From contig NEEC01000002.1 of the NCBI GenBank assembly GCA_002189035.1, positions 2,480,001-2,544,000 on the forward strand: a DNA stretch of 64,000 bases, written 5' to 3'. This stretch comes from Utricularia gibba. Taxonomy: Eukaryota > Plantae > Magnoliophyta. The translations under genes were made by a program, and so were the position numbers. A model generated the notes under the pieces. That model was not told where the DNA came from and searched no databases. It saw nothing but the letters and a program-made list of their open reading frames with translations. Shown here piece by piece: positions 1,592 through 49,590 of the stretch; within the stretch, counting starts at the first letter, position 1, and the number at the start of each line of letters is the position of its first letter.

Positions 1592-4500
1592 ATGGCAACA
1601 AGGCCGGAACAAGAAGCCAAGCTCCAGGTTTTCCTGCAATGGCTGAAGGTCAATGACTTGCATTTTTTCTTTCAGAAGCTTCTTATTTTTCGTACTTTTT
1701 ATGGTCTTCAAAGTTAACGTTCTCGAAATAGAGCAATTGTTGATACAGGCGAATGGAGCAGAATTACGGGGTTGTGAAATCAAATACTGCGATTCGAGCA
1801 AACGGTTCGGAATATTTTCGTCGAACCACGCGCGTGATGGTAAACACTCAAGAGCTCTATGAATGAAATTCAAAATGCACTGTCTTTAGTGCTCTGAAAT
1901 AATCATCCTTTTATGTAATTGAGAAATTTAGATGCTTTCTTTCCAGTTGTTGCTTTATTCATCAGGTATTGTTGCTCTATGTTGTTTTTTGTTTTTAATA
2001 TAAGTCGTTTCTTTAATTCTCCATGTCTTTTATTTTTGTCCTTAGGAATCCTGATGGTTGTTCCCCTTCATCTGGCCATAACTCCCATGACTGTTCTAGA
2101 AGATCCACTGATGGGACGTGAATGCCGATTAATGTTTGAGAATGGAAATGTTGATGACAGATTGTTGATAATGTTGTTCCTGACTGTGCAACGCCTTCGA
2201 GAAAACTCCTTGTGGAAACCGTATATACTCTATTTTTGTGTTTTTCTTGTTTAAAACGATGGAGTTGCATGGGCAAAATATTTTGTTTTGTAATAACTTC
2301 TATTTTGAATGGGCGAAAATGTTGAGAGGCTCGAGTGATTATCTTATGATCTTATGCGCAGGTATCTTGATATGCTTCCTGATGAATTTGGGAATCCACT
2401 GTGGTTTACTGCTGATGAGCTTGCAGAACTCAAAGGAACAACATTGCATCGAGCTACTGAGCTTCAGGTCATCTATTTTCTCTACAAAAATAATATCATA
2501 TCCCTCATCTTTGAAGCTCTTCTTTCTGATATTTTCCTTCAAAATGAATTTCATTTTCTCCTACTGTAAGAATGCCCTCATATTTTTATGGAAAACAAAA
2601 ATTGCCCCAAGGGATGTTTGTTGTGCTCACAGAAGGAAAATTTGAAGGCTCTATTCGATGATAAAGTGAAGAATTTAGTTCAAAAGCTTTTGGTTCTTGA
2701 TGGGGAACATGAAAGGTATACTTGGGCTCCTTAATGTTTTACGTTATGTATTCCTTTTGGTTTAGTTTAAATAGTTTCTTTGCATTCTGTTGTGTACTAA
2801 AACCGAAAAATTTTATTTTTCTGCATTCACTGTCATCTTGCAGAGATGTCCAATTTGAGGACTTCCTTTGGTATGTAACACAACTCCTTGTGGTTTGTTC
2901 ACGTTTAATATTTCTTGATGTTCTCTCTTGTTAACTGGTACACACAGGGCTAATTCCATATTTTGGACTCGTGCTCTGAATATTCCTTTCCCTCGCTCAC
3001 ATGTGTTCCCACAAGTTCAACAAATGCATGACAGCTCAAGCGTCGAGCTCTCTGCTTTTGCATGTGGTTCATCTAAAAATATGCCAGACGGGGAAACTGT
3101 CGAAAGTAAGGCTGCAGTCATCCTATTTTCTCAAATGCATGTGGTACATCTGTCTTTAATCCATGTGGACTAGTGTGGCTAATCAGCTGTTGAGATAAAC
3201 CAAGGTGTACTGAGCTCCGTAGAAGATGAAGCTGTATATGTCGAGGCTCTTGTGCCAGGAATTGATTTCTGCAATCATGGTAATATGATAATCATTCTAT
3301 CAGTATGCTGTTTAAGCTGTCCTTATGTTGCACACACCAGAACCATAAGTTCTAATTCAACATGTTGTAGATTGTCAAACTTCTCCATTTTGGCATGTGT
3401 TATATTCACAGAATTGGCTTATGTAGATTTGCAGCCTTCGGCAACATGGGAGGTAGATGTAACTGGGTCTACCACTGGGGCTTGTTCTTCTATGTATCTT
3501 CTTTCTGGTAAGTTCTTGTACTACTTCTAGATAGTATCAGGTATTTTTCTTCAGTTTAAATGGCAAGCTACTGATGAGAGATCAGACTGTAGCAGTTGAA
3601 GGCATTACTCCCGATGATAAGAAAGAGATATCCATTAGTTATGGCAACAAGGGAAATGAGGTACAACGGCCTCTTCAAATTATTCTGTGGCGAAGTCTTT
3701 CAATATAAAGGTGGTTAGGTATACCAAATTGGTTATTCAACAAGTGTAATGGAGTTTTTGAGGATGGGAGTCATCATTGGTATTTCGTTTAACTTCACCG
3801 TTTTATGTATCCTCTCGTATAAGCACCGTCCAATTAGGTATCCCAAATTGGTTAGTCTGAAAACTTTTAACTGCTGAAACTAGCTGGCAGATAATCTTTT
3901 CCAAAACTTCCGCTATTGATTGCAACCTGGTGCAGGAGCTTCTCTACCTTTATGGATTCGTTATAGAGGATAACCCTGATGACTATCTCATGGTGAGTAA
4001 TTTTTTTCTCAGCTTCGTGGTTACTAATCTTGTCATTAGATATACATTTTTTTAGGATTTTCTTTCATTGCCTTCTGTTAACCATCAGATGAAACATCAC
4101 AGATTCATTATCCCATGGAAGCTCTAATGGATGCGCCCTTCTCGGAGGCCAAAATGCAGCTTCTTGAGGCACAGGTATTATTTCTATAGTTGCAAGGGTA
4201 TTGCGCGAAGAGACTCTTACATGTCTTTTTAGCATCCATGTCGCCTCTTTCTCTACAGGAAGCTAATGCTAGGTGCCTATTGCCCAGAACTCTGCTGAAA
4301 AACGGTTTTCCCCTTGAATGTGGAGGAACCAACAACGATGGACAAGATCCCACAATCTTGTCTTACCACGATAAACTTGTTTTTCCTGAAGAATTCTTGT
4401 CTGCCTTGAGAACAATAGCCATGAAAGAAAGTGAGCTCTACCATGTTACTTCCATGCTTGACCAGGTAATTCTTCCAGTTCATTATTCCATGATATCTTC

Positions 4501-5033
4501 CTGCTAAAAATTTTCCTACATGTTTCTGAAGCTGGGTGGAACGGAGAGGCGATCAGCTCTGTCTGAAGAGCAGGTGCGATCAGCTATCCAGGACGCTTGT
4601 GGAGATAGCAATGCTCTCCAACTTCTCGTTGATCTCCTTTCCATGAAGTAACTCGAAAGTTCCTTTGTTTTTTTTTTTCCACAGCTGAACCTTGTTCTCC
4701 TGATCCTGTTCCCTCTGCTCTACCTCCACAGGCTGATGGAACTGGAAGAGGGCACGGGAACAGAAGCGAGAGATGCTGAGCTGCTTTCAGTGGAAAAGAA
4801 AAGGCAAGTCAAGTTATTCCGCCGCGCCGTACATACAGTCCAGGAACTGGATTATTGACTTCCATGGATTCTTGCTTTTCTGCTGCAGACTTGATGGAGA
4901 AGACGATGGCGGCCGAAACAGGTGGGCGTGTTTAGTGTACAGGCACGGGCAGAAGCAACTCACTCGTGCCTTCCTAAGGGAAGCAGAGCGCGGTCTAGAG
5001 CTGGCGTTACTTCCGTCCCACATCGGAAAATAA
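1592..5033 (+). CDS. SET-domain protein-lysine methyltransferase (SETD3/Rubisco-LSMT-like; At1g01920-like), multi-exon
   Basis: Spliced translation MATRPEQEAKLQVFLQWLK|ANGAELRGCEIKY..FGIF, LLMVVPLHLAITP, YLDMLP..FGNPLWF, NSIFWTRALNIP, ALVPGIDFCNH, ISISYGNKGNEELLYLYGF, LVFPEEFLSALRTIAM, VYRHGQKQLTR; GT-AG sites seen at the exon edges inspected. Confidence 0.9.
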
Positions 5034-5200
5034 CCAGGGCCGGAAACGATGGGTCATTTTAGAAAAATTCTCATCTCATACGCAAAATAGTCATATAATA
5101 TATTGACGTAAATTATTTGGAATTTACATGAATTACGTCAATATGAAACATTTGTTTCCGTTTCGGTTTCATACCTTGGCCGTGGGTGTAATGAGATAAC

Positions 5201-5392
5201 ACGAAATAAGATTACATAAATTATATATGTAAATAATTAATAATTAAGTGAATTATCATATTTATCATGATATTATATGAATATAATGGTGATAGGGACT
5301 CTTGGGAATAATATTATCATTTCAATATGTACATAATAAGATAATAAAATATAATTTTTCTTTTTACAGCGGGGCGTCTAAATTGTATAAAA
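5201..5392. repeat. Right arm of the inverted repeat flanking the SET gene
   Basis: Reverse complement of 1089-1282. Confidence 0.88.
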
Positions 5393-5472
5393 GGAATACA
5401 TCCCGTATAGTATAGAGTATTATAATTTAAATGTATTATACATTACATGCTCCTGTATTGTAATTTGTAGTT

Positions 5473-6183
5473 GGGACGGGAGAAAGAGCGATAAAGAGGT
5501 ACAAGAAGGTCCTCCAAGGCGTCAAGTACAAATTCTTTTCAAATTTCTCATCAACAACATAATCCCTGTCATCACTTCTTTTCTACTAACCCTTCCACAA
5601 AACACAAACCTGAGTAGTTCTCCTGTGCTCTGGATCTTCCTTACGTCCCTATTTGTATATTCAATTCTGCAAATTCTTGCAATCCCTTACTCGAGAAATC
5701 AACGCCCTTTTTTACGGTGCTGCTTCCGCGTCTGCTGCCTTTGCTCTCTTCGCGGCGGGGGCAGTGCCTCGATGTCAGAATCAGCTTCAGTTTCTCCGGC
5801 GGAGGAGATTCCAGTTATTCCAATTCGTTGCAACAATCAGAGGTATAGAGAGAGCAACAGCTGGAAAGAAAGAGAAACGCGTAGGCATGAAGAACGCGAA
5901 GAGGGCAAAGGCAGCAGACGCGGAAGCAGCACCGTAAAAAAGGATGCTGATTTCTCCAGTAAGGGTAAATGATTGCAAGAATTTGAAGAATTGAATATAC
6001 AAACAGGGACGTGATGAAGATCCAGCACAGGAGAACTACTCAGGTTCGTGCTTTGTGGAAGAAGGGTCAGTAGAAAAGAAGTGGTGACCGGGATTACGTT
6101 GTTGATGAGAAATTTGAAAAGAATTTGTACTTCACGCCTTGGAGGAGCTTCTTGTACCTCTCTATCGCTCTTTCTCCGGTCCC
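5473..6183. repeat. Fold-back inverted repeat (hairpin 2): arms 5473-5754 and 5895-6183, ~140-nt loop, derived from a 4-TM family gene
   Basis: About 90% arm identity by eye with 3 small indels; perfect stretches of 35 nt (aagtacaaattc...aacaac) and 39 nt (cctttttt...gcctttgc). Confidence 0.93.
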
Positions 6184-6220
6184 TGATAGATAGCTGCTCC
6201 TTGTCGCCCTTCCTTCCCAT
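5757..6220 (-). pseudogene. 4-TM family copy (B-related, different N-terminus MGRKGDKEQ...), frameshifted and 3'-truncated
   Basis: QILFKFLINNVIPVTTSFLLTL..NLSSSPVL, then a 2-bp deletion near 6030; downstream YGAASASAAFALFAFFMPTRFS is in another frame. Confidence 0.8.
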
Positions 6221-6481
6221 CCCATGTTGGATGGGGTAAATGATTGCAAGAATTTGCAGAATTGAGTACACAGCATTCTGTATAAAAGGCGCCGCGAAGG
6301 CTACTGATGGTGTGATCGGAGCTGCGTTTCTTTTTATCATGTATAAATTAACAGCCTTCCTTATACACTGAGTGAACGCGTCTTTGATGTATAATATTTT
6401 GTATCATTTTGTAATGTTTAATTAAAAGTAATGAATGGAATTTTTGTGTACTATTTTTTTGGCAAAGAAAAGATAATTTTC

Positions 6482-6941
6482 GAATCATCGCACTCTTCTG
6501 TATCGGATGCTGAGGAGGATCCATCTCTGTCTCTGCCCCAGCCAACTTGTTCATCGCCGCTTCCGACGGCCAGACGAAACTGCTCCCTTACATCAGGAGC
6601 AACGATGCCGATCATCACACTTCACATTCACATCTATGGCCGTGAATACTACCTCCTGAGTGTCTTCTTCTTCGTGATCTACAGCCGTGCCATGGCAATG
6701 CGCCTCAGTTGCAATGGTTTCATCACTAGAGGACTCTGAATCTTCTCTGCTGCTTGCACCACCGCCGCCTAACTGCAACTTATCTGCAACGCCTTCTGTC
6801 TTTTTATGGGCTGTTGATATATTTTCGTTCTCATCCACTGGATTCAAGTCAGCAGCTATTGATGTGCAGTCATAATTCTCTTCATCTTCTTCGAGTGTCC
6901 TTTGCATTGCCTTTAGTTGTTCCTGCTGCCTCACGAATAGC
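6482..6941 (-). pseudogene. Inverted, internally deleted fragment of the FHA gene last exon
   Basis: Minus-strand translation RQQEQLKAMQRTLEEDEENYDCTSIAA... matches 10955-11285, then jumps to ~11730-11855. Confidence 0.9.
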
Positions 6942-6968
6942 TATGTGACTAGAATGTGCTAAATTAAT

Positions 6969-7700
6969 ATACTTCCACAAACTACAATGGATTTGCACCT
7001 TTTTGTGGTACTGAATTGGTCAGTGAAGACACTTGGTTTGCCTTTTATTTTTAAATGAGAAGATTCATTTTTTGAAGTTGAGTTGGATCTTGCACCATAT
7101 GGCAGAACTTTCTGGCACTCTGTGCGAGTGGCTATTATGATGGGACTATATTCCATCCAAAAATTAAGGGCTTCATGATACAAGGTGGTGATCCCACTAA
7201 CACTGGCAAGGGAGGAACAAGTATATGGGGTAAAAAGTTCAGTGATGAGATAAAAGAATCTCTCAAGGCTAGTTTTTCTGTACTTTTTTGGTTTCATGAA
7301 AATCATACTATGCTAGTGATATGTTTCTTTTTGAACAATCACTGATGTTCTTCTACTTCATTGCGTATTACAGCACAATGCTCGAGGTATACTATCCATG
7401 GCTAACAGTGGCCCCAACACCAATGGAAGTCAGTTTTTCATAACACACGGCAAGGACTCTACACCATCTTCGGTAAAGTGATTCATGGATTTAAAGTTCA
7501 GTAAGGAACAGTGAACCGGTTTAATGACTGGCTTGTGAACCGGAGGACAAGCTATTCGATTTTTTTGGGCTTTGAGTGGCTATATGTAATAAAAGCTCGT
7601 TTGTGGTAATTGGGCCTTACTACTGATGGGCTTGACGATCCACGTCAGTGAATAGTGAAAAGACAAGAAAATCCTCCACGCCCAGCTTCCTCGAGACGCT
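6969..7700 (+). pseudogene. Degenerate cyclophilin (PPIL3/CYP18-1) copy: exons 3-4 plus downstream flank
   Basis: Matches 53459-54006 and ~54590-54755. FHRNI is changed to FHPKI (catalytic-Arg position), exon 4 has a 16-bp deletion, and exons 1, 2 and 5 are absent. Confidence 0.9.
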
Positions 7701-7815
7701 GGAACTGAGTGATACCGAAAAGCGCGGCCAACGGCACCTACATGCGGAGCCTATAGGTTTTATGAAATACGCGCCATTCCGGAATTGGAATCTAGTTGCA
7801 ATACCTCCTGGCTCA

Positions 7816-10800
7816 ATGGCGAAGGTTAATGGAAGCCCGGCGTCACAGGGGTCCTCTGGCGGGAGTCCGAACCCGGCGAGAGATCCTACTGCTCTCCCCC
7901 TTGCGAATTCGGCCAACGAACACTGTAAAGGCAACATCACCCCTGGGCCGGAAATTGGAGTCTCTGTGCCTCAGGAAACTGCCGCGGCATCGGAAGAGTT
8001 CATATCCTCTGTCGCTGCAATGGTAGCCGCTCAGCCGGTGCCGCCTTCGGATCTCAATGTTTGGGGCGTGCTCACAGCTATAACTGATAAGGCACGAAAG
8101 CGGAAACAGGTTTGTGAGTTTACCATTGGTTGTTTGTGAGTTTCATTTCATTAGAATCTTGGATTTTGTGATTCACAAATGCTTCTTGCTTGGAGAAGCT
8201 TTCCTTCAGTAAACAGTACTGTTTTTTTTTTCTTTTTATTTCGGTACCGATACATGACTTTTTATACAAGGGCGTTAATATGCTTCTGACATCGGATGAG
8301 CACTGCATTGGCCGGCTTGTGGATGATCCAAATTTCCGGATTATGTCACCTGCGGTTAGTGCTCGTCATTGCAAGATTACTAGAAAGCGAGTTACTACAA
8401 AAGATACAGAGGATCAATCTGGCTGCTGTTTTTCGGTATTCTTGAAGGATACGAGGTCAAAGATCCTTCATGCAGGTTGTGAATTATATTTTTTGTAATA
8501 TACTGATGATTAATTGTTGTCTGCAGTACAAATGGTACGTATTGGAACTGGGAAAAGCTGAGTAAAAGTGCCTCGGATGTAAAGCTGTGTCATGGAGACA
8601 TTATCTCCATAGCATTTGCACCGCATCATGGTAAAGCCCATGCTTTTTAACTAAGAGTCTATATTAGTTCGATTTCAACTAAATAGCTCTGCAGCATAAT
8701 GCACTAGAGTATTCTTAAATGAATCTTGCCTGTCCTGTTTTACAAAACTTCATCAATTGCAGAGCTTGCATTTGCTTTTGTTTTTCGAGAAGTCAAGATG
8801 TCGTCAACCGTATCTCCTTGCAGGCTTTTAAAGCGAAAACCAGGTACCCACATGTGTGTATCTTCTCTTTGGAATTGGTTGATGCGAGTTCTCGTAATCA
8901 TGCATAAGGCAAGAACTAACTTTATAAGCGCATATTTCTCATTTTGTTTCAAGATGATTTTCCTGCTGAGAGCAAGAGACATAAGGGTCTCGGCATAGGC
9001 GCTTCTGATGGTCCGGTGTCTCTTGATGATTTTCGGAGCCTTCAAAGATCTAACACAGTAACTACTGCTTATACATGACTGTGACACTAGCATACCCCTT
9101 CGAAAATTTCATTCCTGTATATTCAAAATATTTGGTTGAAATCTTGCTGGATTCTCAACAAGTCATTCTATGTAGGATCTCCGGAAACTTCTGGAGGATA
9201 ATGTTGCGACCATTGAATCCCTACGAAAGGATAACCAAATAGCCAGTGAAAAGCATGAGATTGTATGTCTGCTTTTTCTTATGCACTTTTTTCTTTTACA
9301 GTTTCTAGACTATGAACTTGCCGTGAGTTTCATTTAAAAAACGAGAGTCGTTTTTCAACTATCTGGTTCTTGGACATTCACTTTTGTCTCATTCTATTTC
9401 CTTGTTTGTTTTCCTTTTGTAGGAAATGAAAAACTTGAAAGAATCAACCTCAAAACTTTATGTGGATAAGCTATCTGAATTGACTCGAACATTGGAGGCA
9501 CAAGATAAGGAGTTGATGGAGCTGAACAAAATCTCAGCTGACCAGAAGCATGAAATAGACACCCTTAGTCAGCGGCTCGCTGCTTCTGTACAGTCATTTG
9601 TTGAAGCCAATGAAATAATGGAGTGGTACGTTGCTTGTTTAGAATTTCAGGTTGATATTGTCTTGCTTGGTCCTGTTTGTGTCTGATTTCATTAGTAGTA
9701 CTTGTTCCAAGTCATTGTCAAGGTTCATGCGGAAGCCTGGATGAATTTTTCATATCCAGAATCACTTTCTTCAAAAGCATTATCATGAACTAATTTTTCG
9801 TCTTCAGAGGCTGGAATTATTTAGGATTCCTGATCTATGAATGTACACTTTTAAACATCTATCTCTTTTTCAGCCAAAAGAAGTCTATATCGCAACTCAA
9901 AGCACAATTAGATGAAGAACGTGATCTGAGAAGGGAGGAGCGAGAAAAGGCATCTGTGGATATGAAAATGGCACTACAGAAAGTCCAAGCGGAGGCTGAA
10001 GAGGAGCTAAAACGTAAGTCTGAGTGTGCACTGAAGCGAGAGAAGGAACAACAAGATATCATACAGAAGCTTCAGGTTTTCTGGATTTCTCCATAAAATC
10101 ATATGCGCTCGTTTTTCTCACAGATTCCTTGTTCTCATTTTTTTTAAATTCAGGAATCCGAGAAAGAAAGGTGTCTATTGGTGGAAACTTTACGCTCAAA
10201 ATTGGTATGAGATGATTTCCAATTTTAATTTCATCTGAACACGTTTCTTTGAATAATGCTCTCGGTACTAACCTTTTGTAGGAAGACACAAGAGAAAAAC
10301 TGGTTAGCTCTGATAACAAAGTGCGGCATCTGGAGTCTCAGATTTCTCAGGAACGGGAAGCTAATGCTGTCAATAGAAAAGTATCTTGATTCTTTCTTCT
10401 TGCACCATATGTTTTTTACATTAAGATTTCTCGATATCCATTAGAACTTGTCTCTATGAACCCAGAAGCTTGAAGAACTTGAGCATGAGAGAACAAGACT
10501 GACTAAAAAACTTGAGAATGAAAAGGTACACTTTGCTGCTCGACATTTTATAAAAGAGAGCTTAACATTGTTTTGATGTTGTGGTGCTTTAGATGTGCTT
10601 CAAACTATCTTCTTTCTAGAAATAATGGGTTGCAGATTTCGATCTGATTTTTTCTTGGTGCTGTAGCAGGCTGCTCGGGAAGAAGCTTGGGCTAAGGTGT
10701 CTGCTCTTGAACTCGAAATAACTGCTGCCATGCGTGATCTTGACTGTGAAAGACGCAGACTAAAAGCTGCCAAGGAAAGAATAATGCTGCGGTACGCATT

Positions 10801-11868
10801 GTGGGAAATACAAACCTCTTAAAGCTGATAGATAATTTCATACCATCTGCTTCCTTTGTTTTTAGTTGTAAATGCTTGAAATTCACTTCATGTCGACCCT
10901 GCTGCAGCGAAACTCAGCTTCGTGCTTTCTACTCAAGCACAGAGGAAATACAATTGCTATTCGTGAGGCAGCAGGAACAACTAAAGGCAATGCAAAGGAC
11001 ACTCGAAGAAGATGAAGAGAATTATGACTGCACATCAATAGCTGCTGAATTGAATCCAGTGGATGAGAACGAAAATATATCAACAGCCCATAAAAAGACA
11101 GAAGGCGTTGCAGATAAGTTGCAGTTAGGCGGCGGTGGAGCAAGCAGCAGAGAAGATTCAGAGTCCTCAAGTGATGAAACCATTGCAACTGAGGCGCATA
11201 GCCATGATGCCACGGCTGTAGATCACGAAGAAGAAGACACTCAGGAGGTAGTATTCACGACCATAGATGTGAATATGAAGTGTGCTTTTGACGTTAACGC
11301 CGTTGGAACAGAGCTGATACCCGAGACGGAGGGTGTAGGCACAGCCAGGATCCATGAAACTGAGCATGTCTCGGAGACGCAGAGCCAGGGACGTGGCATC
11401 GACACCACACAGTTGGAATGCAAGATGGATGTAGACAAACACCCCGCCACAGATGAGTGCCGTGTGAGTCATGGAGAAGCTAACCCTGAGGCGTCTGGAG
11501 CTCAGGATCTGAGAGAATGTGCTCATGGAACAGCAGACCTCTTGGCATCAGAAGTAGCCGGCAGCTGGGCCTGCAGCACTGCACCTTCAGCCCTTGGGGA
11601 AAACGAGTCTGGGAGAAGCAAAGATCACGACGCGGGTGATCCCACTGCTTCCGAGAGTCGGAATGTTGCACCCTCCCATGTTAGAGCTTGTGCGCGAAGA
11701 AATCATGAGCGCCGGGCATTGAGCGAGATGATCGGCATCGTTGCTCCTGATGTAAGGGAACAGTTTCGTCTGGCCGTCGAAAGCGGCTATGAACAAGTTG
11801 GCTCGGGCGGGGATGGATCCTTGTCTGCTTCCGATACAGAAGACTGCGATGATTCCAATGAAGGATGA
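7816..11868 (+). CDS. FHA (SMAD/FHA) domain coiled-coil protein (At2g45460-like), multi-exon, apparently intact
   Basis: VWGVLTAITDKARKRKQ|GVNMLLTSDEHCIGRL..VSARHCKI..KDT|STNGTYWNWEKL..HGDIISIAF, GPVSLDDFRSLQRSN, AAREEAWAKVSALELE, ETQLRAFYSSTEEI, ADLLASEVAGSWACSTAPS; splice phases consistent where checked. Confidence 0.9.
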
Positions 11869-12017: not shown

Positions 12018-12556
12018 CTCATTTCACCAGGCACCACCACATCCTCATCAACTTCTCCGTCCCAGCTCAAACCTTCCCCGGGACAGTCCCCGCCACCATA
12101 TTCTCCGATTCCACGACCTCCAAGATGGAGAAGCAGATTGAGATTTTCAAATTTCTCACCAAATCCATATTCCCCGTCTCGACTTCTCTTCTCCCCACCC
12201 TTGTACACGACAAGACGAACCTGAACAGTGCTCCTGTGCTGTAGATCTTCCTCACGTCTCTCTTTGTGTATTCAAATCTACACATTCTTGCCATCATTTA
12301 CCCCCACTGGAAAAAAGAGCGCTTTTTTTACGGTGCTGCTTCAGCCTCTGCTGCCTTTGCTACCTTCGCTCTCTTCGCGTTCTTCATGCCTACGCGTTTC
12401 TCTTTCATCCCAGCTGTTGCTCTCTCTATTGCTGTGATCGTTGCAGCGAATTGGGATAACTGGAATCTCCTCAGCCGCGACTCCGCTGAAGAAACTGAAG
12501 CTAATTCCGACATCCAGGCACCGCCACCGCCGCGCAGGCTAATAATGATGGTGTGA
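12018..12556 (+). pseudogene. 4-TM family B copy lacking exon 1, with premature TAG
   Basis: Begins inside the intron (tcatttcaccag). In-frame ATG at 12125, TGG>TAG at 12242-12244; the remainder matches 41563-41994. Confidence 0.85.
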
Positions 12557-12876
12557 TCGGAGCTGTGGTTTTCTTTTTATCATAAATAAATTAACGACTG
12601 TTAACAGTTACACCCTGATGTATAATACGTACCATTTTGTAATGTTTAATTAAAAATATGAATGGAGTTGTTGTGTATTATTTTTGAGGAATAATGTTGG
12701 AAAAGAAAATATAATTTTGGAAAAAGGTGTTAAAAAAGAGCAATGTTTAAAAGGGGAGATTCTGGTGGTTGGAAAACCAGATCTCTTCTTCCTTTTCTGT
12801 TATTTCTCTCGAATTGTGCGCCGGGATCCGCCACCGCTGCCGGAAAAGTCATTTTTTCGTCAATTTTCTGTCAGAA

Positions 12877-14335
12877 ATGAGTAACGGAGAGCTTCTTCAA
12901 ATCGAACCGCTCGAGCTTCAATTTCCTTGTGATTTCTTTCTCTTGTTTTTTTATCCTTTGCCGTGGGCTTCTTTTTTTTTTTTTTTTTTTTGAAGTTTTG
13001 ATTGTCGATTTGGAAGGATTCTTGTTTCGTGTTCAGTTTCGATATCTGTCGATTTTACTCGGTTGTCTGCCTTCTGGGCTTTGAATTTTCTTCCACGCGT
13101 CTAATTTTTTTTTATCCAATTCTTTTTCCTTGGTGCGTTGAAAGTCGAATTGAAGAAGCAGATCTCGTGTTCCCTGCAATTGATCAACAAATCGGATAAT
13201 TATGTTGCATTCAAGGTATCATGCTGCTGCTTCCTTCCTCAATGTTATGATTTTCAGCGTATTATCCCTACGGTCAGACGTGAGATAATGTAAAGGAGGA
13301 ATTTTGCGATGACATTGTGTAGTATCTCCGTTTCATGATGATTGATGAACACGTTCCAGGTGAAAACAACTAACCCAAAAAGTATTGCGTGACACCGAAT
13401 ACGGGAGTCGTCATTCCTCACTCTACATGTGATGTTGCAGGTAATGGATTTTTATTTCATCCTTCCGCTTTTGCCTAAGAGGAACGCAGGACTCGGGGTG
13501 TATTCCACTCCGCAGTGCTAGTCATTTATGGTTTGCTGATTCATATTTCTATGCCCTTCAGTTACAATGCAAGCACAAAAGGAGGCTCCTCCAGACATGC
13601 AGTGCAAGGATAAATTTCTCCTCCAGAGTGTCGTAGCTAGCCCTGGATCAACAGTAAAGGATATTACTGCAGAAATGGCGTGTGGCTTGTCAGTGACCCT
13701 GATAAGTTGATTAGAGATGCGGTTGATGTCCAAAAAAAAAATGTTTTTTTGACAAGTGTTTACGTCTTTTATCAGTTCAACAAAGAGTCTGGAAACCATG
13801 TTGATGAGAACAAGTTGAGAGTTGTGAATGTTCCACCTCCAAGGCCACCTTCTCCAGTTTATGAGGGAGTGGAGGAAGGCTCAGACAATGAGGCAGCCTA
13901 TCAGTATTCTGATTCTAATGCTGTGAGTCCTGGGATCTTTTCCTATCAGTATTGTACAATTTTTAAATGTCATCAGTTTTGCAATGCATCACAATCTTCC
14001 CATCTCTTTTATAATTGCAGATGTTTAAAGCATTGGGTGAACAGAAGGGGACTACAACTGAGGTTACATCTGATACTATGATAGTGTTATTTCGAAGTTG
14101 CCTTAAAATTGAAAAATCCTTTTCTACTGGGGTTATAAGGAAGATGTTTTTATGTTCTCATTATCTTAGCGAAAGCAGGAAAATAAATCTTGAGTTAATT
14201 CTACACAAGATGTTAGTAGGGATTCTCTTGTCCTGGTGGACTTCATTATCAAATATAATCGATGTTTTATGAAGAGTGGTATTGCTTTCTTGAGATGCTT
14301 TGTGCTGCTAATATTTCAAGGGCTACGTTACTTGA
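12877..14335 (+). pseudogene. 3'-truncated VAP27 copy lacking coiled-coil and TM exons
   Basis: MSNGELLQIEPLELQFP..., apparent -1 in C run 13374-13376, GT>GC donor at 13678, 21-bp in-frame deletion (SPRDSVS); breaks in the intron at acttga 14330-14335. Confidence 0.85.
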
Positions 14336-14468
14336 CATCTCCCAAGTTTGTGTGGAGCGTCACCGCCTTGGGTGACCCAAATTGTTCGTGCAGCCAAAAA
14401 CAGGATACATAATCAAGACTGAAAAATCGAAACATGCACCGACCTGTTCGACTGAACTCCCCACTCGC
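14330..14468 (-). pseudogene. Cyclophilin intron-1/exon-2 fragment (mirror of 47685-47820)
   Basis: [12 protein letters not shown]; matches 53051-53187. Confidence 0.85.
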
Positions 14469-14779
14469 CGGAAAATAAAACTGGCATCCGTACCCACCGG
14501 ACCTCGTCGAATTAACCTTGAAATAACAAGCTCCTGATTTGAAACGTTGAAAAGTAGTCAAACCCTAAATTAAAATATCCAATGCACATTATTTATTTTT
14601 AAATAAATAACAAAAATTGCAACACCCAAAGTAATGGGCATTGAGCGAGATGAACGAATATCGTTGCTCCTGATGTAAGGGAACAGTTTCGTCTGGGCGT
14701 CGAAAGCGGCGATGAACAAGTTGCCTTTTCGTTCACAACATCATTCCTCAAAAATAATACACAAAAACTCCATTCATAA

Positions 14780-15130
14780 TTATCGGATTTGTTGATCAGT
14801 TGCAGGAAACACCAAGGAAAAAGAAGTTGATTAAAAAATTAGAAGGTAAACAACCAAATAAAGTTGGAAGAATTCTTCCAAATCGACAATCAAAACTTAG
14901 GAAAAAAAAACCCACGGCAAGGGATACAAAAATAAGAGGAGAAGGAAATTTCTAGGAAAGTGAAGCTGGAGCGGTTCGATCTGGAGGAGCCCTCCGTTAC
15001 TCATTTTGTGACTGTGAGAGATTCGTGGACAGAGAATTGACGAAAACAACGACTTTTCCGGCTGCGGTAGCGGATACCGTCTCGCAATTCGAGAGAAATA
15101 ACGGAGAGGGAAGAAAAGAAAAGATCTGGT
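14780..15130 (-). pseudogene. Diverged VAP27 promoter/exon-1/partial exon-2 fragment (mirror of 47020-47375)
   Basis: MSNGGLLQIEPLQLHFP at 15004. Confidence 0.8.
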
Positions 15131-15323
15131 TTCCCCTACGGCCACAATCGCCCGTTTTAAATATTGCCTTTTTTAAACAACCTTTTTTTTCCAAAATTAT
15201 TCCTCAAAAAATAGTACACAAAAATTCCATTCATAATTTTTAATTAAACATTACAAAATGATACAAAATATTATACATCAAACACGCGTTCACACAGTGT
15301 ACAATGCTCTTAACAGTGTTGTT

Positions 15324-15997
15324 TTATATACGATAAAAAGAAAAGCAGCTTCGATCACACACCATCAGTAGCCTGCGCGGCGGTGGTGGTGCCACGATGT
15401 CGGGATTAGTTTCAGTTTCTCCGGCGGAGTCACGGCGGAGGAGATTCCAGTTATCCCAATTCGCTACAACAATCAGAGCAATAGAGAGAGAAACTGCTGG
15501 AATGAAAGAGAAACGCGTAGGCATGAAAAACGCGAGGAACGCAAAGAGAGCAAAGGCAGCGGAGGCGGAAGCAGCAGCGTAAAAAAGGCGCCCGTTTCTC
15601 CTCTGAGGGTAAATGATGGCGAGAATGTGTAGAGTTGAATACACAAAGAGAGACGTCAGGAAGATCTGTTGCACACCGTTCAGGTTCGTCTTGTCGCGTA
15701 CAAGTGTTAGGAGAAATATCGCGACGGGGATGATGGTTTTGGTGAGAAATTTAAAAATCTCCATCAGCTTCTCCGTCTTGGAGCTCGTAGTATCGGAGAA
15801 GATGGTGGCGTGGACTATCGCGGGGGAAGGTTCGGCCTGCACGGAGAAGTTGATGAAGATGTGGTGCCTGGTGAAATGGGGGATGTCATTTTCGTTTCAC
15901 ACAGAAACTGAGCTAACTGTAAGTGATCAGAAACATACCTTGCCGCGAACGAGGGTTCCGCCGAGCCATAACCGCGTGCGTTCTGGAAAGCGGCCAT
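15324..15997 (-). CDS. 4-TM family B, two-exon gene, 200 aa, intact (mirror of 46153-46826)
   Basis: ATG 15997, TATA-like tataaat upstream, GT-AG intron; translation identical to the 46-kb copy. Confidence 0.7.
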
Positions 15998-17794
15998 TGT
16001 CGGATGAGGATTGCTTCCTGGAGGGCGGGGGGATTTATAAGGACCATTGAGGAAATTAGCCGATTTATTCAACCAGTGACGCATACGATCAACCTGTGAC
16101 GCCTAATACCTTTCGATTTCACATCCACATTTTATTTCAACAAATAATGAAAAGTCTTTTTGGAGAAATCTTTTGTCTTATTAAACACCTTTTGATTTGA
16201 CATCCTCATCTTTTTTCAATAAATAATGCATCCTCATCTTAGAACCTGTGAGAAAAAGCATCATCTTAATCGTAGTAAACACTCTTTTTTTTTTTTGGAG
16301 AAAAGTTAATACACCACTTAAACTATAATCTTCACTTATTTAAAGAGAGCGGCATTCATATGAGTTAAATAATTATTTATACTCAAATTTACCAATTAAA
16401 ATTTTTTGTCTTTTTTTTTAAAAAAAATTGAAATCATCATTGCTTTCGTCATTAATTTATTCAACATAAAAGAATAAATTTTAGGACTACTTTATACATA
16501 AAGTGAAGAATAAGTTAATGGTAAAAATACGGTCAAAATGTTAAAATAATAAATTCAAATAGAAAGTTTACATTTTTGGAATGTACAAGAATTACGTCAA
16601 TACACATAAAACCAATCATATGATTAATAATTGTATTTTTTGGAATTATTTAATTTTTATAATAACTTAGGACCATATTTGTAGTTTTAATAAAAATAAT
16701 AATAAAATAAAGATACTCACCGTGTTTGTACCTGTGGCTATGTTTTGCAACCATTTTCATTCTCAAAATGAGAAATTACCAGTTTTGCAAAACAGACATG
16801 TTTTCATTTTTTAAAATGAAAATTTTTATAAAAAAATAAATGAAAAATGATACTCATTCTAACATGATCGTTTTTCTAATAATATCATTATTTCATTTTT
16901 TTATTTTTATAATTTGGTGAATTAAAATTTATTTTTTTTATGTAAATTCTTATTTTAATATTGATTTCTCATTTTGTAATACAACATATTTTCATTATGT
17001 AATCTTTTTTTAAAGTTACATAACAACAATTTATTTCATTTATCATTCTTATTTAGTTTATACCTTATTGGTTTCCGTGCGGTCGTCCCGACGGTGTACG
17101 AGACGTGGGACCCCTATCGCCCCAAGAAAAATTTCTGCACCTAACATCCATTAATGTTGTGACGGTGGATTGGAATCATGACATTTCACCAAAACTAAAA
17201 AAAGTGAATATTAATAAAAAATATATTATATTAAGTCTAGGATGTATTTGTTAAGATTTAGTTCAGGAACTTTTATTATTAGCTATTACAAACTATGTAT
17301 TATCAAAATATCACTCAATCATAACATATGAATAAAATTATTTATTTTCAAATTGAAGAACATGGAGTGTTTTTTATATAAATAGAAATCACTCTAATAC
17401 ATCATTAAAATTTATTTCTTAAATTGAATGCAAACTTGAAAGAAGTTTATTCAAGGATAGGATAGGATAGGATAAAATCAGCGTTCCAATGCGGGGCCCT
17501 TTCTTTTAGTGGACCCCAACCAACTCCTCCAACCGTTGGAGTCCAACGTGGAAACAAAATGGCGAGGGCAAGTCACTGTTGATCATCGGGGCCCATAACT
17601 TCTCGAACTAATCAACGCCACTTAAGTGGATCCTTTCTTTTAGTGGACCCCACGCAACCCCTCCAAGTTATTAATGTAAAATAATAAAATAAATAAAAAT
17701 TATAAATATTTTAATATAAGTAAATGTCAGTTACGTTATTGAATACCGTAATTTTTTATACAATGTGACACTGACACCACCATGGATTACGGCA

Positions 17795-39295: not shown

Positions 39296-41219
39296 TCACA
39301 CTCTCTTGAGGATGTACCCCAACAAAACACCCGCCAGGGCGGCCACCACAAGATAGATGACTGGAATGCCGTTGCTTTTCCGGGTTTGACGCCTCAGCAC
39401 CTCCTGCGGGGTATGATGCCCCGTGTGGTAAGTTATTGAACAAGAGGATGGGGAAAACTGAGATTTCAGAAGCTGTTGGGATGATCCTGAAATGCTTACC
39501 AATTCCCGCTCGAGCTTCTGATTAAGCTGGAGAGCAGATCTCTTCTCCTCTGTCAGGTTGGAAACCAAGGACTGACCCTGCAATTTGGGGGAGAAACGAC
39601 ACAATGATGAGGAAAAGACCCTTCAGCGTTCACCAGAAAAATAGGAGAAATTATCATCCAACTTGACTCTTTCTATGTCTCCCTCTACATAGTGCTTAGC
39701 GCATTACCCAGTCTTTGAATCAAGTAATGTGGCCCTTGAAATATTAGCAGCACAAAGCATCTCAAGAAAGCAATACAACTCTTCATAAAACATCGATTAT
39801 ATTTGATAATGAAGTCCACCAGGTTGCATGAGATGCAAGAGAATCTCTAGCTAACATCTTGTGTTTTTCTATAGAATTAATTCAAGGTTTATTTTCCTGC
39901 TTTCGCTTAGATAATGAGAACATAAAAACATCTTCTTTATAGTACCAGAAGAAAAGGATTTTTCAATTTTAAGGCAACTTCGAAATAACACTATCATAGT
40001 ATCAGACTTAACCTCAGTTGTGGTTTCCTTCTGTTCACCCAATGCTTTAAACATCTGCAATAATAAAAGAGATGGGAAGATTGTGATGCATTACAAAACT
40101 GATGACATTTAAGAATTGTACAATCCATTCAAACAAATAAAAGATCCCACGACTCACAGCATTAGAATCAGAATATTGATAGGCTGCCCCATTGTCCGAC
40201 ACAGAGTCACGCGGTGAGGAGCCTTCCTCCACTCCCTCATAAACTGGAGAAGGTGGCCTTGGAGGTGGAACATACACAACTCTCAACTTGTTCTCATCAA
40301 CATGGTTTCCAGACTCTTTGTTGAACTGATAAAAGATGTAAACACTGGTCAAAGAACATTTTTTTTTTTAACATCAACCCGCAACTCTAATCAACTTATC
40401 AAGGTCACTGACAAGCCACACACCATTTCTGCAGTAATATCCTTTACTGTTGATCCAGGGCTAGCTACGACACTCTGGAGGAGAAATTTATCCTTGCACT
40501 GCATGTCTGGAGGAGCCTCCTTTTGTGCTTGCATTGTAACTGAAGGGCATAAATTATGAATCAGAAAACCATAAATTACTAGCACTGCGGATCGGAATAC
40601 ACCGCGAGTCCTCCGTTCCTCTTAGGCGAAAGCGGAAGGATGAAATAAAAATCCATTACCTACAACATCACATGTAGAGTGAGGAATGACGACTCCCGTA
40701 TTCGGTCTCACGCAATACTTTTTGGGGTTAGTTGTTTTCACCTGGAACGGGTTCATCAAATCATCATGAAACGGAGATACTACACAATGTCATCGCAAAA
40801 TTCCTCCTTTACATTATCTCACGTCTGACCGTAGGGATAATACGCTGAAAATCATAACATTGAGGAAGGAAGCAGCAGCATGATACCTTGAATGCAACAT
40901 AATTATCCGATTTGTTGATCAATTGCAGGGAACACGAGATCTGCTTCTTCAATTCGACTTTCAACACACCAAGGAAAAAGAATTGGATAAAAAAAAATTA
41001 GACGCGTGGAAGAAAATTCAAAGCCCAGAAGGCAGACAACCGAATAAAATCGGCAGATATCGAAAATGAACACGAAACAAGAATCCTTCCAAATCGGCAA
41101 TCAAAACTTCAAAAAAAAAAAAAAAAAACCCACGGCGAGGTATAAAAAAACAAGGGAAAGAAATTACAAGGAAATTGAAGCTCGAGCGGTTCGATCTGGA
41201 GAAGCTCTCCGTTACTCAT
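39296..41219 (-). CDS. VAP27: VAMP-associated protein VAP27 (MSP, coiled-coil, TM), intact
   Basis: MSNGELLQIEPLELQFPFELKKQISCSL..VAFKVKTTNPKKYCVRPN..TMQAQKEAPPDMQCKDKFLLQS..PPRPPSPV..C-terminal IPVIYLVVAALAGVLLGYILKRV*. Confidence 0.95.
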
Positions 41220-41562
41220 TTCTGACAGAAAATTGACGAAAAAATGACTTTTTCCGGCAGCGGTGGCGGATCCCGGCGCACAATTCGAGAGAAATAACAG
41301 AACAGGAAGAAGAGATCTGGTTTTCCAACCACCAGAATCTCCCCTTTTAAACATTGCTTTTTTTTAACAACCTTTTTCCAAAATTATATTTTCTTTTGCA
41401 ACATTATTCCTGAAAAATAATACACAAAAACTCCATTCATAATTTGTAGTTAAACATTGCGAAATGGTAGATATTATACATCAAACACGCGTTCACTCTC
41501 AGTGTATAAGGCTGTTAACAGTCGTTAATTTATTTATGATAAAAAGAAAACCACAGCTCCGA

Positions 41563-42227
41563 TCACACCATCAGTAGCCTGCGCGGCGGCGGCGGTGCCT
41601 GGATGTCGGAATTAGCTTCAGTTTCTCCGGCGGAGTCGCGGCGAAGGAGATTCCAGTTATCCCAATTCACTGCAACAATCAGAGCAATAGAGAGAACAAC
41701 AGCTGGAATGAAAGAGAAACGCGTAGGCATGAAGAACGCGAGGAACGCGAAGAGAGCAAAGGCAGCAGAGGCGGAAGCAGCTCCGTAAAAAAGGCGCTCT
41801 TTTTTCCAGTGGGGGTAAATGATGGTGAGAATGTGTAGAGTTGAATACACAAAGAGAGACGTGAGGAAGATCCACAGCACAGGAACACTGTTCAGGTTCG
41901 TCTTGTCGTGTAGAAAGGTGAGGAGAAGAGAAGTCGCGACGGGGAATATGGATTTGGTGAGAAATTTGAAAATCTCAATCAGCTTCTCCGTCATGGAGGT
42001 CGTAGAATCGGAGAAGATGGTGGCGTGGACTGTCCCGGCGAAGGTTTGGCCTGGCACGGAGAAATTGATGAGGATGTGGTGCCTGGTGACATGAAGAATT
42101 TCATTGTCGTTTCACAAAGATACTGAGCTAACTGTAAGTGAACAGGAACAATTGTTTCGGTTTCATACCTTGGCGCGAACGAGGGTTCCGCCGTGCCTTA
42201 GCCGCGTGCGTCCTGGTAAGCAGCCAT
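41563..42227 (-). CDS. 4-TM family B: exon 1 has TAA at codon 10, but an in-frame ATG at 41994 gives a 143-aa short form
   Basis: ATG 42227, TAA 42198-42200, conserved GT-AG intron, TATA at 42256-42264; AAG>ATG at 41994 relative to paralogs; ORF open to RRLLMV*. Confidence 0.55.
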
Positions 42228-44244: not shown

Positions 44245-45792
44245 GTGCTACTGTGGGGCCAGATGACCAGGAGTGACGTCGGACTGCGTAGCCTCACGCG
44301 GCTCTATATTTTGAAAACCAAAATAGATGACGTGGATAAAAAATTGGTTAAATAGATGTACTCCTCTATTTTGCTTTGGTAAATAGATAATGTTATTAAA
44401 ATATTAAATTATGTTTATTTAATTATTTATTTTTCATGAATTTAGATGTCAATAAACAATCTTATGTATTATTTTACATTAATAACTTGGAGGGGTTGCG
44501 TGGGGTCCACTAAAAGAAAGGATCCACTTAAGTGGCGTTGATTAGTTCGAGAAGTTATGGGCCCCGATGATCAACAGTGACTTGCCCTCGCCATTTTGTT
44601 TCCACGTTGGACTCCAACGGTTGGAGGAGTTGGTTGGGGTCCACTAAAAGAAAGGGCCCCGCATTGGAACGCTGATTTTATCCTATCCTATCCTATCCTT
44701 GAATAAACTTCTTTCAAGTTTGCATTCAATTTAAGAAATAAATTTTAATGATGTATTAGAGTGATTTCTATTTATATAAAAAACACTCCATGTTCTTCAA
44801 TTTGAAAATAAATAATTTTATTCATATGTTATGATTGAGTGATATTTTGATAATACATAGTTTGTAATAGCTAATAATAAAAGTTCCTGAACTAAATCTT
44901 AACAAATACATCCTAGACTTAATATATATTTTTTATTAATATTCACTTTTTTTAGTTTTGGTGAAATGTCATGATTCCAATCCACCGTCACAACATTAAT
45001 GGATGTTAGGTGCAGAAATTTTTCTTGGGGCGATAGGGGTCCCACGTCTCGTACACCGTCGGGGACGACCGCACGGAAACCAATAAGGTATAAACTAAAT
45101 AAGAATGATAAATGAAATAAATTGTTGTTATGTAACTTTAAAAAAAGATTACATAATGAAAATATGTTGTATTACAAAATGAGAAATCAATATTAAAATA
45201 AGAATTTACATAAAAAAAATAAATTTTAATTCACCAAATTATAAAAATAAAAAAATGAAATAATGATATTATTAGAAAAACGATCATGTTAGAATGAGTA
45301 TCATTTTTCATTTATTTTTTTATAAAAATTTTCATTTTAAAAAATGAAAACATGTCTGTTTTGCAAAACTGGTAATTTCTCATTTTGAGAATGAAAATGG
45401 TTGCAAAACATAGCCACAGGTACAAACACGGTGAGTATCTTTATTTTATTATTATTTTTATTAAAACTACAAATATGGTCCTAAGTTATTATAAAAATTA
45501 AATAATTCCAAAAAATACAATTATTAATCATATGATTGGTTTTATGTGTATTGACGTAATTCTTGTACATTCCAAAAATGTAAACTTTCTATTTGAATTT
45601 ATTATTTTAACATTTTGACCGTATTTTTACCATTAACTTATTCTTCACTTTATGTATAAAGTAGTCCTAAAATTTATTCTTTTATGTTGAATAAATTAAT
45701 GACGAAAGCAATGATGATTTCAATTTTTTTTAAAAAAAAAGACAAAAAATTTTAATTGGTAAATTTGAGTATAAATAATTATTTAACTCATA

Positions 45793-45912
45793 TGAATGCC
45801 GCTCTCTTTAAATAAGTGAAGATTATAGTTTAAGTGGTGTATTAACTTTTCTCCAAAAAAAAAAAGAGTGTTTACTACGATTAAGATGATGCTTTTTCTC
45901 ACAGGTTCTAAG
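45793..45912 (+). repeat. Copy of the cyclophilin 3' UTR/flank (mirror ~16240-16358)
   Basis: gaatgccgctctc..aagtgaagattatagttt..ctacgatt..gatgctttttctca matches ~54222-54352. Confidence 0.8.
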
Positions 45913-46152
45913 ATGAGGATGCATTATTTATTGAAAAAAGATGAGGATGTCAAATCAAAAGGTGTTTAATAAGACAAAAGATTTCTCCAAAAAGACTTTT
46001 CATTATTTGTTGAAATAAAATGTGGATGTGAAATCGAAAGGTATTAGGCGTCACAGGTTGATCGTATGCGTCACTGGTTGAATAAATCGGCTAATTTCCT
46101 CAATGGTCCTTATAAATCCCCCCGCCCTCCAGGAAGCAATCCTCATCCGACA

Positions 46153-46826
46153 ATGGCCGCTTTCCAGAACGCACGCGGTTATGGCTCGGCGGAACCCTCG
46201 TTCGCGGCAAGGTATGTTTCTGATCACTTACAGTTAGCTCAGTTTCTGTGTGAAACGAAAATGACATCCCCCATTTCACCAGGCACCACATCTTCATCAA
46301 CTTCTCCGTGCAGGCCGAACCTTCCCCCGCGATAGTCCACGCCACCATCTTCTCCGATACTACGAGCTCCAAGACGGAGAAGCTGATGGAGATTTTTAAA
46401 TTTCTCACCAAAACCATCATCCCCGTCGCGATATTTCTCCTAACACTTGTACGCGACAAGACGAACCTGAACGGTGTGCAACAGATCTTCCTGACGTCTC
46501 TCTTTGTGTATTCAACTCTACACATTCTCGCCATCATTTACCCTCAGAGGAGAAACGGGCGCCTTTTTTACGCTGCTGCTTCCGCCTCCGCTGCCTTTGC
46601 TCTCTTTGCGTTCCTCGCGTTTTTCATGCCTACGCGTTTCTCTTTCATTCCAGCAGTTTCTCTCTCTATTGCTCTGATTGTTGTAGCGAATTGGGATAAC
46701 TGGAATCTCCTCCGCCGTGACTCCGCCGGAGAAACTGAAACTAATCCCGACATCGTGGCACCACCACCGCCGCGCAGGCTACTGATGGTGTGTGATCGAA
46801 GCTGCTTTTCTTTTTATCGTATATAA
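46153..46826 (+). CDS. 4-TM family B, two-exon gene (46153-46211, 46283-46826), 200 aa, intact
   Basis: TATAAAT 46111-46117; ATG in acaATGg context; 71-nt GT-AG intron; splicing joins MAAFQNARGYGSAEPSFAA-R-HHIFINFS in frame to the 172-aa ORF; four hydrophobic segments. Confidence 0.72.
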
Positions 46827-47019
46827 AACAACACTGTTAAGAGCATTGTACACTGTGTGAACGCGTGTTTGATGTATAATATTTTGTATCATTTTGTAAT
46901 GTTTAATTAAAAATTATGAATGGAATTTTTGTGTACTATTTTTTGAGGAATAATTTTGGAAAAAAAAGGTTGTTTAAAAAAGGCAATATTTAAAACGGGC
47001 GATTGTGGCCGTAGGGGAA

Positions 47020-47375
47020 ACCAGATCTTTTCTTTTCTTCCCTCTCCGTTATTTCTCTCGAATTGCGAGACGGTATCCGCTACCGCAGCCGGAAAAGTCG
47101 TTGTTTTCGTCAATTCTCTGTCCACGAATCTCTCACAGTCACAAAATGAGTAACGGAGGGCTCCTCCAGATCGAACCGCTCCAGCTTCACTTTCCTAGAA
47201 ATTTCCTTCTCCTCTTATTTTTGTATCCCTTGCCGTGGGTTTTTTTTTCCTAAGTTTTGATTGTCGATTTGGAAGAATTCTTCCAACTTTATTTGGTTGT
47301 TTACCTTCTAATTTTTTAATCAACTTCTTTTTCCTTGGTGTTTCCTGCAACTGATCAACAAATCCGATAATTATG
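47020..47375 (+). pseudogene. Diverged VAP27 5' fragment
   Basis: ATG 47146 MSNGGLLQIEPLQLHFP; partial exon 2 ends at aattatg 47369-47375. Confidence 0.8.
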
Positions 47376-47426
47376 AATGGAGTTTTTGTGTATTATTTTT
47401 GAGGAATGATGTTGTGAACGAAAAGG

Positions 47427-47490
47427 CAACTTGTTCATCGCCGCTTTCGACGCCCAGACGAAACTGTTCCCTTACATCAGGAGCAACGAT
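47427..47490 (-). pseudogene. 64-bp antisense fragment of the FHA last exon
   Basis: Reverse complement of ~11738-11800. Confidence 0.8.
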
Positions 47491-47684
47491 ATTCGTTCAT
47501 CTCGCTCAATGCCCATTACTTTGGGTGTTGCAATTTTTGTTATTTATTTAAAAATAAATAATGTGCATTGGATATTTTAATTTAGGGTTTGACTACTTTT
47601 CAACGTTTCAAATCAGGAGCTTGTTATTTCAAGGTTAATTCGACGAGGTCCGGTGGGTACGGATGCCAGTTTTATTTTCCGGCG

Positions 47685-47820
47685 AGTGGGGAGTTCAGTC
47701 GAACAGGTCGGTGCATGTTTCGATTTTTCAGTCTTGATTATGTATCCTGTTTTTGGCTGCACGAACAATTTGGGTCACCCAAGGCGGTGACGCTCCACAC
47801 AAACTTGGGAGATGTCAAGT
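47685..47820 (+). pseudogene. Cyclophilin intron-1/exon-2 fragment
   Basis: Matches 53051-53187. Confidence 0.85.
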
Positions 47821-49278: not shown

Positions 49279-49590
49279 TTCTGACAGAAAATTGACGAAA
49301 AAATGACTTTTCCGGCAGCGGTGGCGGATCCCGGCGCACAATTCGAGAGAAATAACAGAACAGGAAGAGGAGATCTGGTTTTCCAACCACCAGAATCTCC
49401 CCTTTTAAACATTGCCCTTCTTTAACAATCTTTTTCCAAAATTATATTTTCTTTTCCACCATTATTCCTCAAAAATAATACACAAAAACTCCATTCATAA
49501 TTTGTAGTTAATCGTTACAATAGGTACAATTGATCATATAACACTGAACGTATAAACAGACCTTGATGATAAAAAGACAAGCACCTCCGA

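Follow-up and report, generated by a model that had tools for sequence, protein, structure and literature searches.

The inverted repeat at positions 5473-6183 is a gene-derived fold-back, partly transcribed, that is most likely the scar of a rearrangement. We consider it probable that the scar is of a replication type and that the locus is not a working hairpin gene. Positions are those of the window, by which we mean the whole 64,000-nucleotide stretch of Utricularia gibba DNA that was analyzed. The fold-back is an inverted duplication of a member of a gene family present elsewhere in the window, here called B, as the initial annotation of this DNA had claimed. Gene-derived inverted duplications are textbook raw material for plant miRNAs and hairpin siRNAs, and most of them are probably dead ends. 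The locus provides a dated example (7% arm divergence) whose origin is still readable at the junction, and it illustrates that a perfect-looking DNA hairpin need not exist as an RNA hairpin, the public RNA covering one arm.

The two arms of the repeat were found to be approximately 90% complementary and to be separated by a 140-nt spacer, in agreement with the initial annotation. The arm pair aligned over 291 columns with 89.7% identity (blastn, E 3e-109). The arms are 282 and 289 nt in length, the whole fold-back is 711 nt, and a repeat search divided the arms into four gapless blocks, 90-95% complementary across all four. The left arm begins 440 nt 3' of the stop codon (TAA, 5031-5033) of a presumed SET-domain gene, and the 39-nt perfect stem noted previously was recovered, followed in length by a second perfect run. 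The elements of the fold-back are as follows.

5473-5754, plus strand: left arm; 5473-5509 is a non-B leader and 5510-5754 is B in sense, codons 1 to ~80
5755-5894, minus strand: spacer ("loop"), made up of the last (3') third of the B coding sequence and running on into the right arm without a break
5895-6183, minus strand: right arm, B in sense for this strand
5473-5595 with 6061-6183: first gapless block of the arms
5592-5629 with 6024-6061: second gapless block
5630-5690 with 5965-6025: third gapless block
5684-5754 with 5895-5965: fourth gapless block
5706-5744 with 5905-5943: 39-nt perfect stem, encoding the conserved FYGAASASAAFA segment
6098-6132 with 5524-5558: second perfect run, 35 nt

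RNA folding gave one long stem on each strand, with energies of -490.6 kcal/mol for the plus strand and -504.9 kcal/mol for the minus strand, bearing out the predicted hairpin. Relative to shuffled sequences these energies correspond to z-scores of -34 (plus) and -47 (minus), far beyond chance. The locus thus has one feature of hairpin-siRNA loci, namely an inverted repeat, long and near-perfect, whose arms can pair within a single strand. A potential concern is that such a fold-back could be an assembly chimera. This reading was dismissed because the inner junction is spanned by an RNA contig of run X5 (5715-5873), which comes from another genotype, and the outer right boundary (6183/6184) is spanned by three RNA contigs; the inverted repeat is no assembly chimera.

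The B family, from which the fold-back derives, has five copies in the window.

~12128-12553, plus strand: B copy (B12)
15779-15327, minus strand: B copy (B15)
41994-41566, minus strand: B copy (B41)
46371-46823, plus strand: B copy (B46), identical to B15
50010-49594, minus strand: B copy (B49)

The B product is a hydrophobic protein of ~142 residues. Comparison of the family with Pfam gave nothing above noise, and a word search of 5.8 billion proteins gave no match for B, for subfamily A (562-936; equally orphan, with faint similarity to B), or for a 188-codon frame over the transcript described below. A HMMER search of 1.84 billion proteins gave a single match, to the membrane helix of an animal protocadherin, which we rejected as due to chance. 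A protein atlas returned for the B family only generic small bacterial membrane proteins, with scores of at most 0.80, and exact look-ups found no gene calls on record for the transcript contigs or for the B and A open frames. Of the five window copies, B41 alone combines an ATG with an open frame. With respect to the damaged copies, B12 has an in-frame TAG at a conserved W codon, B15 and B46 have lost the first ATG, and B49 is without any ATG. The B sense strand is open in all three frames over 60-105 codons. Differences between B copies were evenly spread across the three codon positions, and dN/dS was 0.5-0.76 among the B paralogs; the deeper branches leading to the hairpin copy gave 0.3-0.5. 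Constraint on the B family is weak.

The arms and spacer can be understood as two unequal copies of one B gene. The region 5748-6120 aligned in one block to all five B paralogs with 75-81% identity (blastn), and for this reason we rejected the idea that the loop is foreign DNA; the spacer is the remainder of the right-hand gene copy, and right arm and spacer together therefore amount to an almost complete gene copy on the minus strand. The left arm represents this B gene in plus-strand sense, without its final 140 nt. Both arms start with an identical 37-nt leader that is not B-like. The arms had been described as coding-dead, and this proved correct, GCG replacing the paralog ATG in both. Also common to both arms are a +1 insertion, located before the YGAASAS codons, and a 3-nt deletion beside the lost ATG. 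Each arm has damage of its own in addition, a 2-nt deletion at 6025 in the right arm and 3-nt and 6-nt deletions in the left arm. Because the lost ATG, the 3-nt deletion, the +1 insertion, and the non-B leader are common to both arms, the parent B copy appears to have been promoterless and dead before the fold-back was formed.

The inner junction and the flanks of the fold-back contain additional elements that bear upon its origin.

5201-5396: AT-rich 198-nt repeat, paired in inverted orientation, across the SET gene, with 1085-1282 (198 nt aligned, 92% identical)
5748-5754: fold-back junction, where B in sense and B in antisense overlap, with CGCG (4 nt, 5751-5754) identical on both sides
6184-6287: patchwork filler, made up of 50 nt, a 39-nt B fragment, and TGTATAAAAGG
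6234-6272: antisense B fragment in the filler, 39 nt, a clear copy in direct repeat of 5963-6001
6288-6484, plus strand: B 3' segment, comprising the last B codons, the stop, and a B-type 3' flank, inverted relative to the right arm
6479-6944, minus strand: inverted fragments of an exon of a neighboring gene; 6479-6616 corresponds to 11858-11727 and 6616-6944 to 11284-10953, the latter at 97%

The microhomology at the inversion junction, a feature of template switching, consists of the shared CGCG, and the overlap would extend to CTTCGCG (7 nt) if the parent carried the CGCGAAG variant that is still present at 6290-6296. Within the filler, the 50 nt at 6184-6233 had no source match in the window. 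The TGTATAAAAGG copy at 6279-6289 is identical over its 11 nt to the sequence at 5384-5394, with an E value of 1.4 by which the match could be due to chance. The B 3' segment showed 66-87% identity to the 3' flanks of the B paralogs (blastn). The inverted fragments at 6479-6944 have as their source a 355-codon exon at 10953-11858, to which they are 97% identical over 330 nt. Because this compares with 75-81% for the adjoining B sequences, the 6479-6944 patch would be younger than its surroundings or have been converted.

The order of elements on the plus strand (left arm, inverted full copy, patches, B 3' end) fits serial template switching at microhomology, as deduced from the product. We propose that the starting point would have been a promoterless, dead B copy in plus-strand sense, followed by its own 3' flank. 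The nascent strand would have switched template at the 4-7-nt microhomology (CGCG or CTTCGCG) and copied in reverse back through the gene up to 6183, after which short patches would have been acquired and copying would have resumed at the gene end, yielding the left arm, the inverted full copy, the filler, and the B 3' segment in that order. Both arms have drifted neutrally since then, and the RNA present at steady state is a non-coding transcript of ~0.5 kb that has its own start and contains the right arm and the B-type 3' end only. Small RNAs, if made, would be a minor side product of longer transcripts that are rare. Template switching mediated by microhomology, termed FoSTeS/MMBIR, has reportedly been described by Lee (2007) and Hastings (2009). 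The locus resembles such events in its inverted duplicate and short spacer, the 4-7-nt microhomology at the junction, what may be short templated insertions from nearby, and the loss of a segment between switch points, but differs in that the mechanism is read from a product that has since diverged by 7%. Inverted duplications of 94 nt, 198 nt, 330 nt, and ~5.6 kb in the window were counted as supporting context for a scar of this kind.

We also examined the differences between the arms, which comprise 12 transitions, 7 transversions, and 3 indels. Pairing as G:U is retained by 4 of the transitions when the plus strand is considered and by 8 for the minus strand (two-sided P 0.39), giving no wobble bias on either strand, and the 7 transversions and 3 indels disrupt pairing on both. 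Stem-preserving substitutions on the transcribed strand, a MIRNA feature, were thus not found among the arm differences. The left arm has accumulated 7 derived changes and the right arm 5. Given 22 differences in 282 columns, a perfect run of at least 39 nt is expected with P = 0.62, and we accordingly rejected the 39-nt perfect stem as a mark of selection or gene conversion; a greater identity toward the hairpin tip was likewise dismissed (P 0.084). CpG observed/expected was 0.83-0.86 in the arms compared with 0.9-1.2 in the B paralogs, and since arm CpG is barely below that of the paralogs, the arms carry no deep methylation footprint. The description of the locus as young holds in a relative sense only, the substitution divergence of 7% between the arms being about equal to that between B12 and B41. 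These data indicate that the arms have drifted neutrally since the fold-back, and nothing in their sequence points to selection for an RNA stem. The only Rfam match was to MIR7723, a Brachypodium family, which was rejected at 41 bits against a gathering score of 200 (159 below); membership in a curated miRNA family was not found in Rfam.

For analysis of transcription, RNA runs from three studies were scored by the share of sampled 31-letter words of 5440-6300 that they contained, and contigs of four RNA runs were placed on 2500-8000. The word share of the locus was at most 0.46 in every indexed RNA run. The reading frame of the upstream gene was rebuilt from splice joints in the RNA contigs, which had eleven GT/GC..AG introns spliced out and ended at 5108 in runs X1 and X2. 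Pfam searches with the individual exons gave no match; NH and ELxYxYGF-type motifs in the spliced frame form the basis on which we take it to be a SET-domain gene. This gene also has alternative acceptors 3 nt apart, of the NAGNAG type (3506/3592 versus 3506/3595), with X1 skipping 85 nt and X2 and X5 skipping 88 nt. The transcribed features are listed here.

4889-5108, plus strand: last exon and 3' UTR of the SET gene; stop at 5031-5033, mRNA end near 5108
5715-5873: junction-spanning RNA contig, X5 only; 159 nt, 3 differences, depth 9, extending 40 nt into the left arm
5868-6397: transcribed segment of ~0.5 kb, extending from the end of the spacer through all of the right arm and the filler into the B 3' segment

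The initial annotation had suggested that read-through from the SET gene could transcribe the hairpin and silence B paralogs in trans. In support of this suggestion, the locus is transcribed and 21-mers from the arms match the paralogs, but read-through was not seen: the SET contigs stop at 5108, and RNA depth was zero over 5260-5627 in all four runs, as it was over 7100-8000. The AT-rich repeat at 5201-5396 also had no RNA depth in the four runs, and in X6 the locus RNA was present while the SET gene was unassembled. The transcribed segment was represented in X1 by a contig at 5868-6378 (511 nt, no differences from the window) with a depth of 9.5, compared with 10.5 for the SET gene, in X2 by a contig at 5905-6397, and in X5, a different genotype, by a contig at 5870-6378 that differs by 7 substitutions and 4 indels. 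We rejected DNA contamination of these runs, because the SET introns are skipped and the flanks (5260-5627 and 7100-8000) are empty; the locus signal is therefore RNA. Contigs placed at 6543-6606 and 6653-6941 were not taken to come from the 6479-6944 fragment, since their loose ends match the real gene or a copy at 14660-14726.

A variant RNA was found in X6, in which 28 foreign letters are followed by 5870-6004 joined to 6188-6289, with 6005-6187 skipped. Splicing at 5870 or over 6005-6187 was rejected, there being no canonical sites on either strand, and the X6 form is probably a structural allele of the locus. Runs X7-X9, sister runs of X6, had a similar word share. RNA contigs break at 5868-5870 in three studies.

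The outer part of the left arm (5473-5714) had no RNA contig in any of the four runs. A single transcript with both arms, the other feature of hairpin-siRNA loci, was thus not seen among these contigs, which by their nature cannot prove absence. With no coverage of the outer left arm in any run, the dominant RNA contains a single arm, from which the 282-bp stem cannot form. This RNA, of ~0.5 kb, most likely lies on the plus strand and runs from ~5868 to poly(A) sites near 6378-6397, an orientation to which we give a chance somewhat better than even. The lean toward the plus strand is based on the right end, which falls in a B 3' flank in native orientation and at the same base in two studies, and on the TATA-like GGTATAGAG approximately 27 nt before 5868.

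The reading most directly opposed to a rearrangement scar is that of a working or nascent hairpin-RNA locus, in which a transcript from its own promoter would run over both arms and diced siRNAs would silence B in trans, ordinary RNA-seq showing merely processing leftovers or a secondary transcript. We regard this as unlikely, and give the same low standing to the narrower proposition that the locus has some hairpin-siRNA output. In its favor, the long stem is very stable on either strand; a TATA-like TGTATAAAAGG lies upstream at 5384-5394, within the AT-rich repeat and directed at the hairpin, 79 nt from the left arm; and the X5 contig continues past the junction and enters the left arm, so that a stem of ~40 bp with a 140-nt loop is possible in some molecules. 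For a given B paralog, 10-23% of arm 21-mers match with at most 2 mismatches, the matching 21-mers (B12, B15/46, B41, B49) cluster at 5705-5734 and 5915-5945, and 4 arm 21-mers are perfect against B41 or B49, from which trans-silencing of B paralogs by the locus would be possible. Against our preferred interpretation stand this TATA-like motif and the X5 contig, and also the following: contigs show presence and not absence; a full hairpin RNA might be diced before assembly or be confined to unsampled tissues; and a scar does not account for the sharp end of the contigs at 5868-5870 in three studies or for the odd form of X6. Against a hairpin gene stand the absence of 5473-5714 from four runs with the low word share in indexed RNA, the full depth of the right arm, which efficient dicing of a stem would not leave, the arm differences with their lack of a structure-preserving bias, and the weak constraint and single intact copy among its supposed targets.

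Known systems provide precedent on both sides. The inverted-duplication model, in which such an arrangement is the starting architecture for new MIRNA and hairpin-siRNA genes, is attributed to Allen 2004, with Bradley 2017 as a further instance of this route to MIRNA/hpRNA genes, in 10.1101/2024.07.25.605110; the same source found the coding-gene route to new miRNAs to be rare. Like MIR161 and MIR163 of Arabidopsis, the arms described here are an inverted copy of part of a protein-coding family, the similarity between arm and gene extends past a single 21-mer, and the best segment could target paralogs. In contrast to those genes, the fold-back of 711 nt with its 282-nt arm is far larger than a MIRNA, the parent was already a pseudogene, no two-armed transcript was seen, and the locus is known from its sequence and from RNA contigs. 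For the SULF locus of Antirrhinum and the YUP locus of Mimulus, small RNAs and a phenotype have reportedly been demonstrated. The present locus is similar to these in being an inverted partial gene duplication located away from its potential targets, on which it might act in trans, but only one arm is found in RNA data and the target family is an orphan under weak constraint.

A role for the transcript that does not involve the left arm was also weighed, namely that the 0.5-kb plus-strand RNA of a pseudogene is antisense to B mRNAs over 5895-6139 and base-pairs with these mRNAs through the conserved patch, functioning either as a trans natural antisense transcript or as a source of nat-siRNAs. 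Consistent with this, the right arm alone is found in RNA, at a depth equal to that of the SET gene; the right end lies where a B-type 3' flank would direct plus-strand polyadenylation (6378 in two studies, 6397 in a third); and the TATA-like motif precedes the 5' end. Rice pseudogenes are known to yield antisense small RNAs against parent genes, transcribed pseudogenes feeding these small RNAs and adjacent inverted pseudogene pairs being listed as dsRNA sources (PMC2708354). The locus has in common with the rice pseudogenes that it is a transcribed dead paralog, possibly antisense to functional relatives, but differs in being known from mRNA-type contigs alone, with its strand deduced from sequence signals. 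Overall identity to the B paralogs is just 75-81%. We hold this reading to be quite improbable, more so than the hairpin gene. The chance is slighter again that the locus acts as a regulator, whether through the antisense 0.5-kb RNA or through rare hairpin siRNAs from the FYGAASASAAFA-coding patch; the second of these routes would call for a full-length hairpin made in tissues missing from public RNA-seq. A selected regulatory role for the locus is given an equally small chance.

The least probable reading, to which we attach very little weight, is that no local duplication took place and that the locus is instead either a mobile fold-back element or MITE or an artefact of the assembly. In its favor, the 198-nt AT-rich repeat adjoins both hairpins of the window. 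Features of fold-back transposons were not found in the window, however: there is no target-site duplication around the arms, the flanks being GTAATTTGTAGTT and TGATAGATAGCTG, and blastn found no second copy of the arm ends. The arms are moreover sister to each other and 75-81% identical to the B paralogs, and an artefact is further opposed by independent RNA contigs of another genotype, in which both the junction and the outer boundary are present. A replication-type scar remains the reading that we favor.

Other inverted duplications were observed in the window. Each copy of the 198-nt repeat ends beside one hairpin, the copy at 1085-1282 having TGTATAAAACG directed at its own hairpin; the pair may represent a short mobile element or belong to an older inverted duplication. 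That second fold-back, at 776-1082, belongs to subfamily A and has arms at 776-869 and 990-1082, 84-94% complementary, with a 120-nt spacer. An intact 124-codon ORF (562-936) encloses its left arm, and 54 nt separate the stop from the inverted copy, so that the hairpin would be part of the mRNA itself. On a larger scale, a giant inverted repeat of ~5.6 kb is formed by 12035-17686 and 44467-50067, with ~28 kb between its arms and a third partial copy at 39867-42150. Its arms are 100% identical over 13832-16295/45855-48318 and 16286-17089/45062-45865 (3.3 kb), explained either by an inverted segmental duplication of very recent date, by conversion still in progress, or by a duplication in the assembly.
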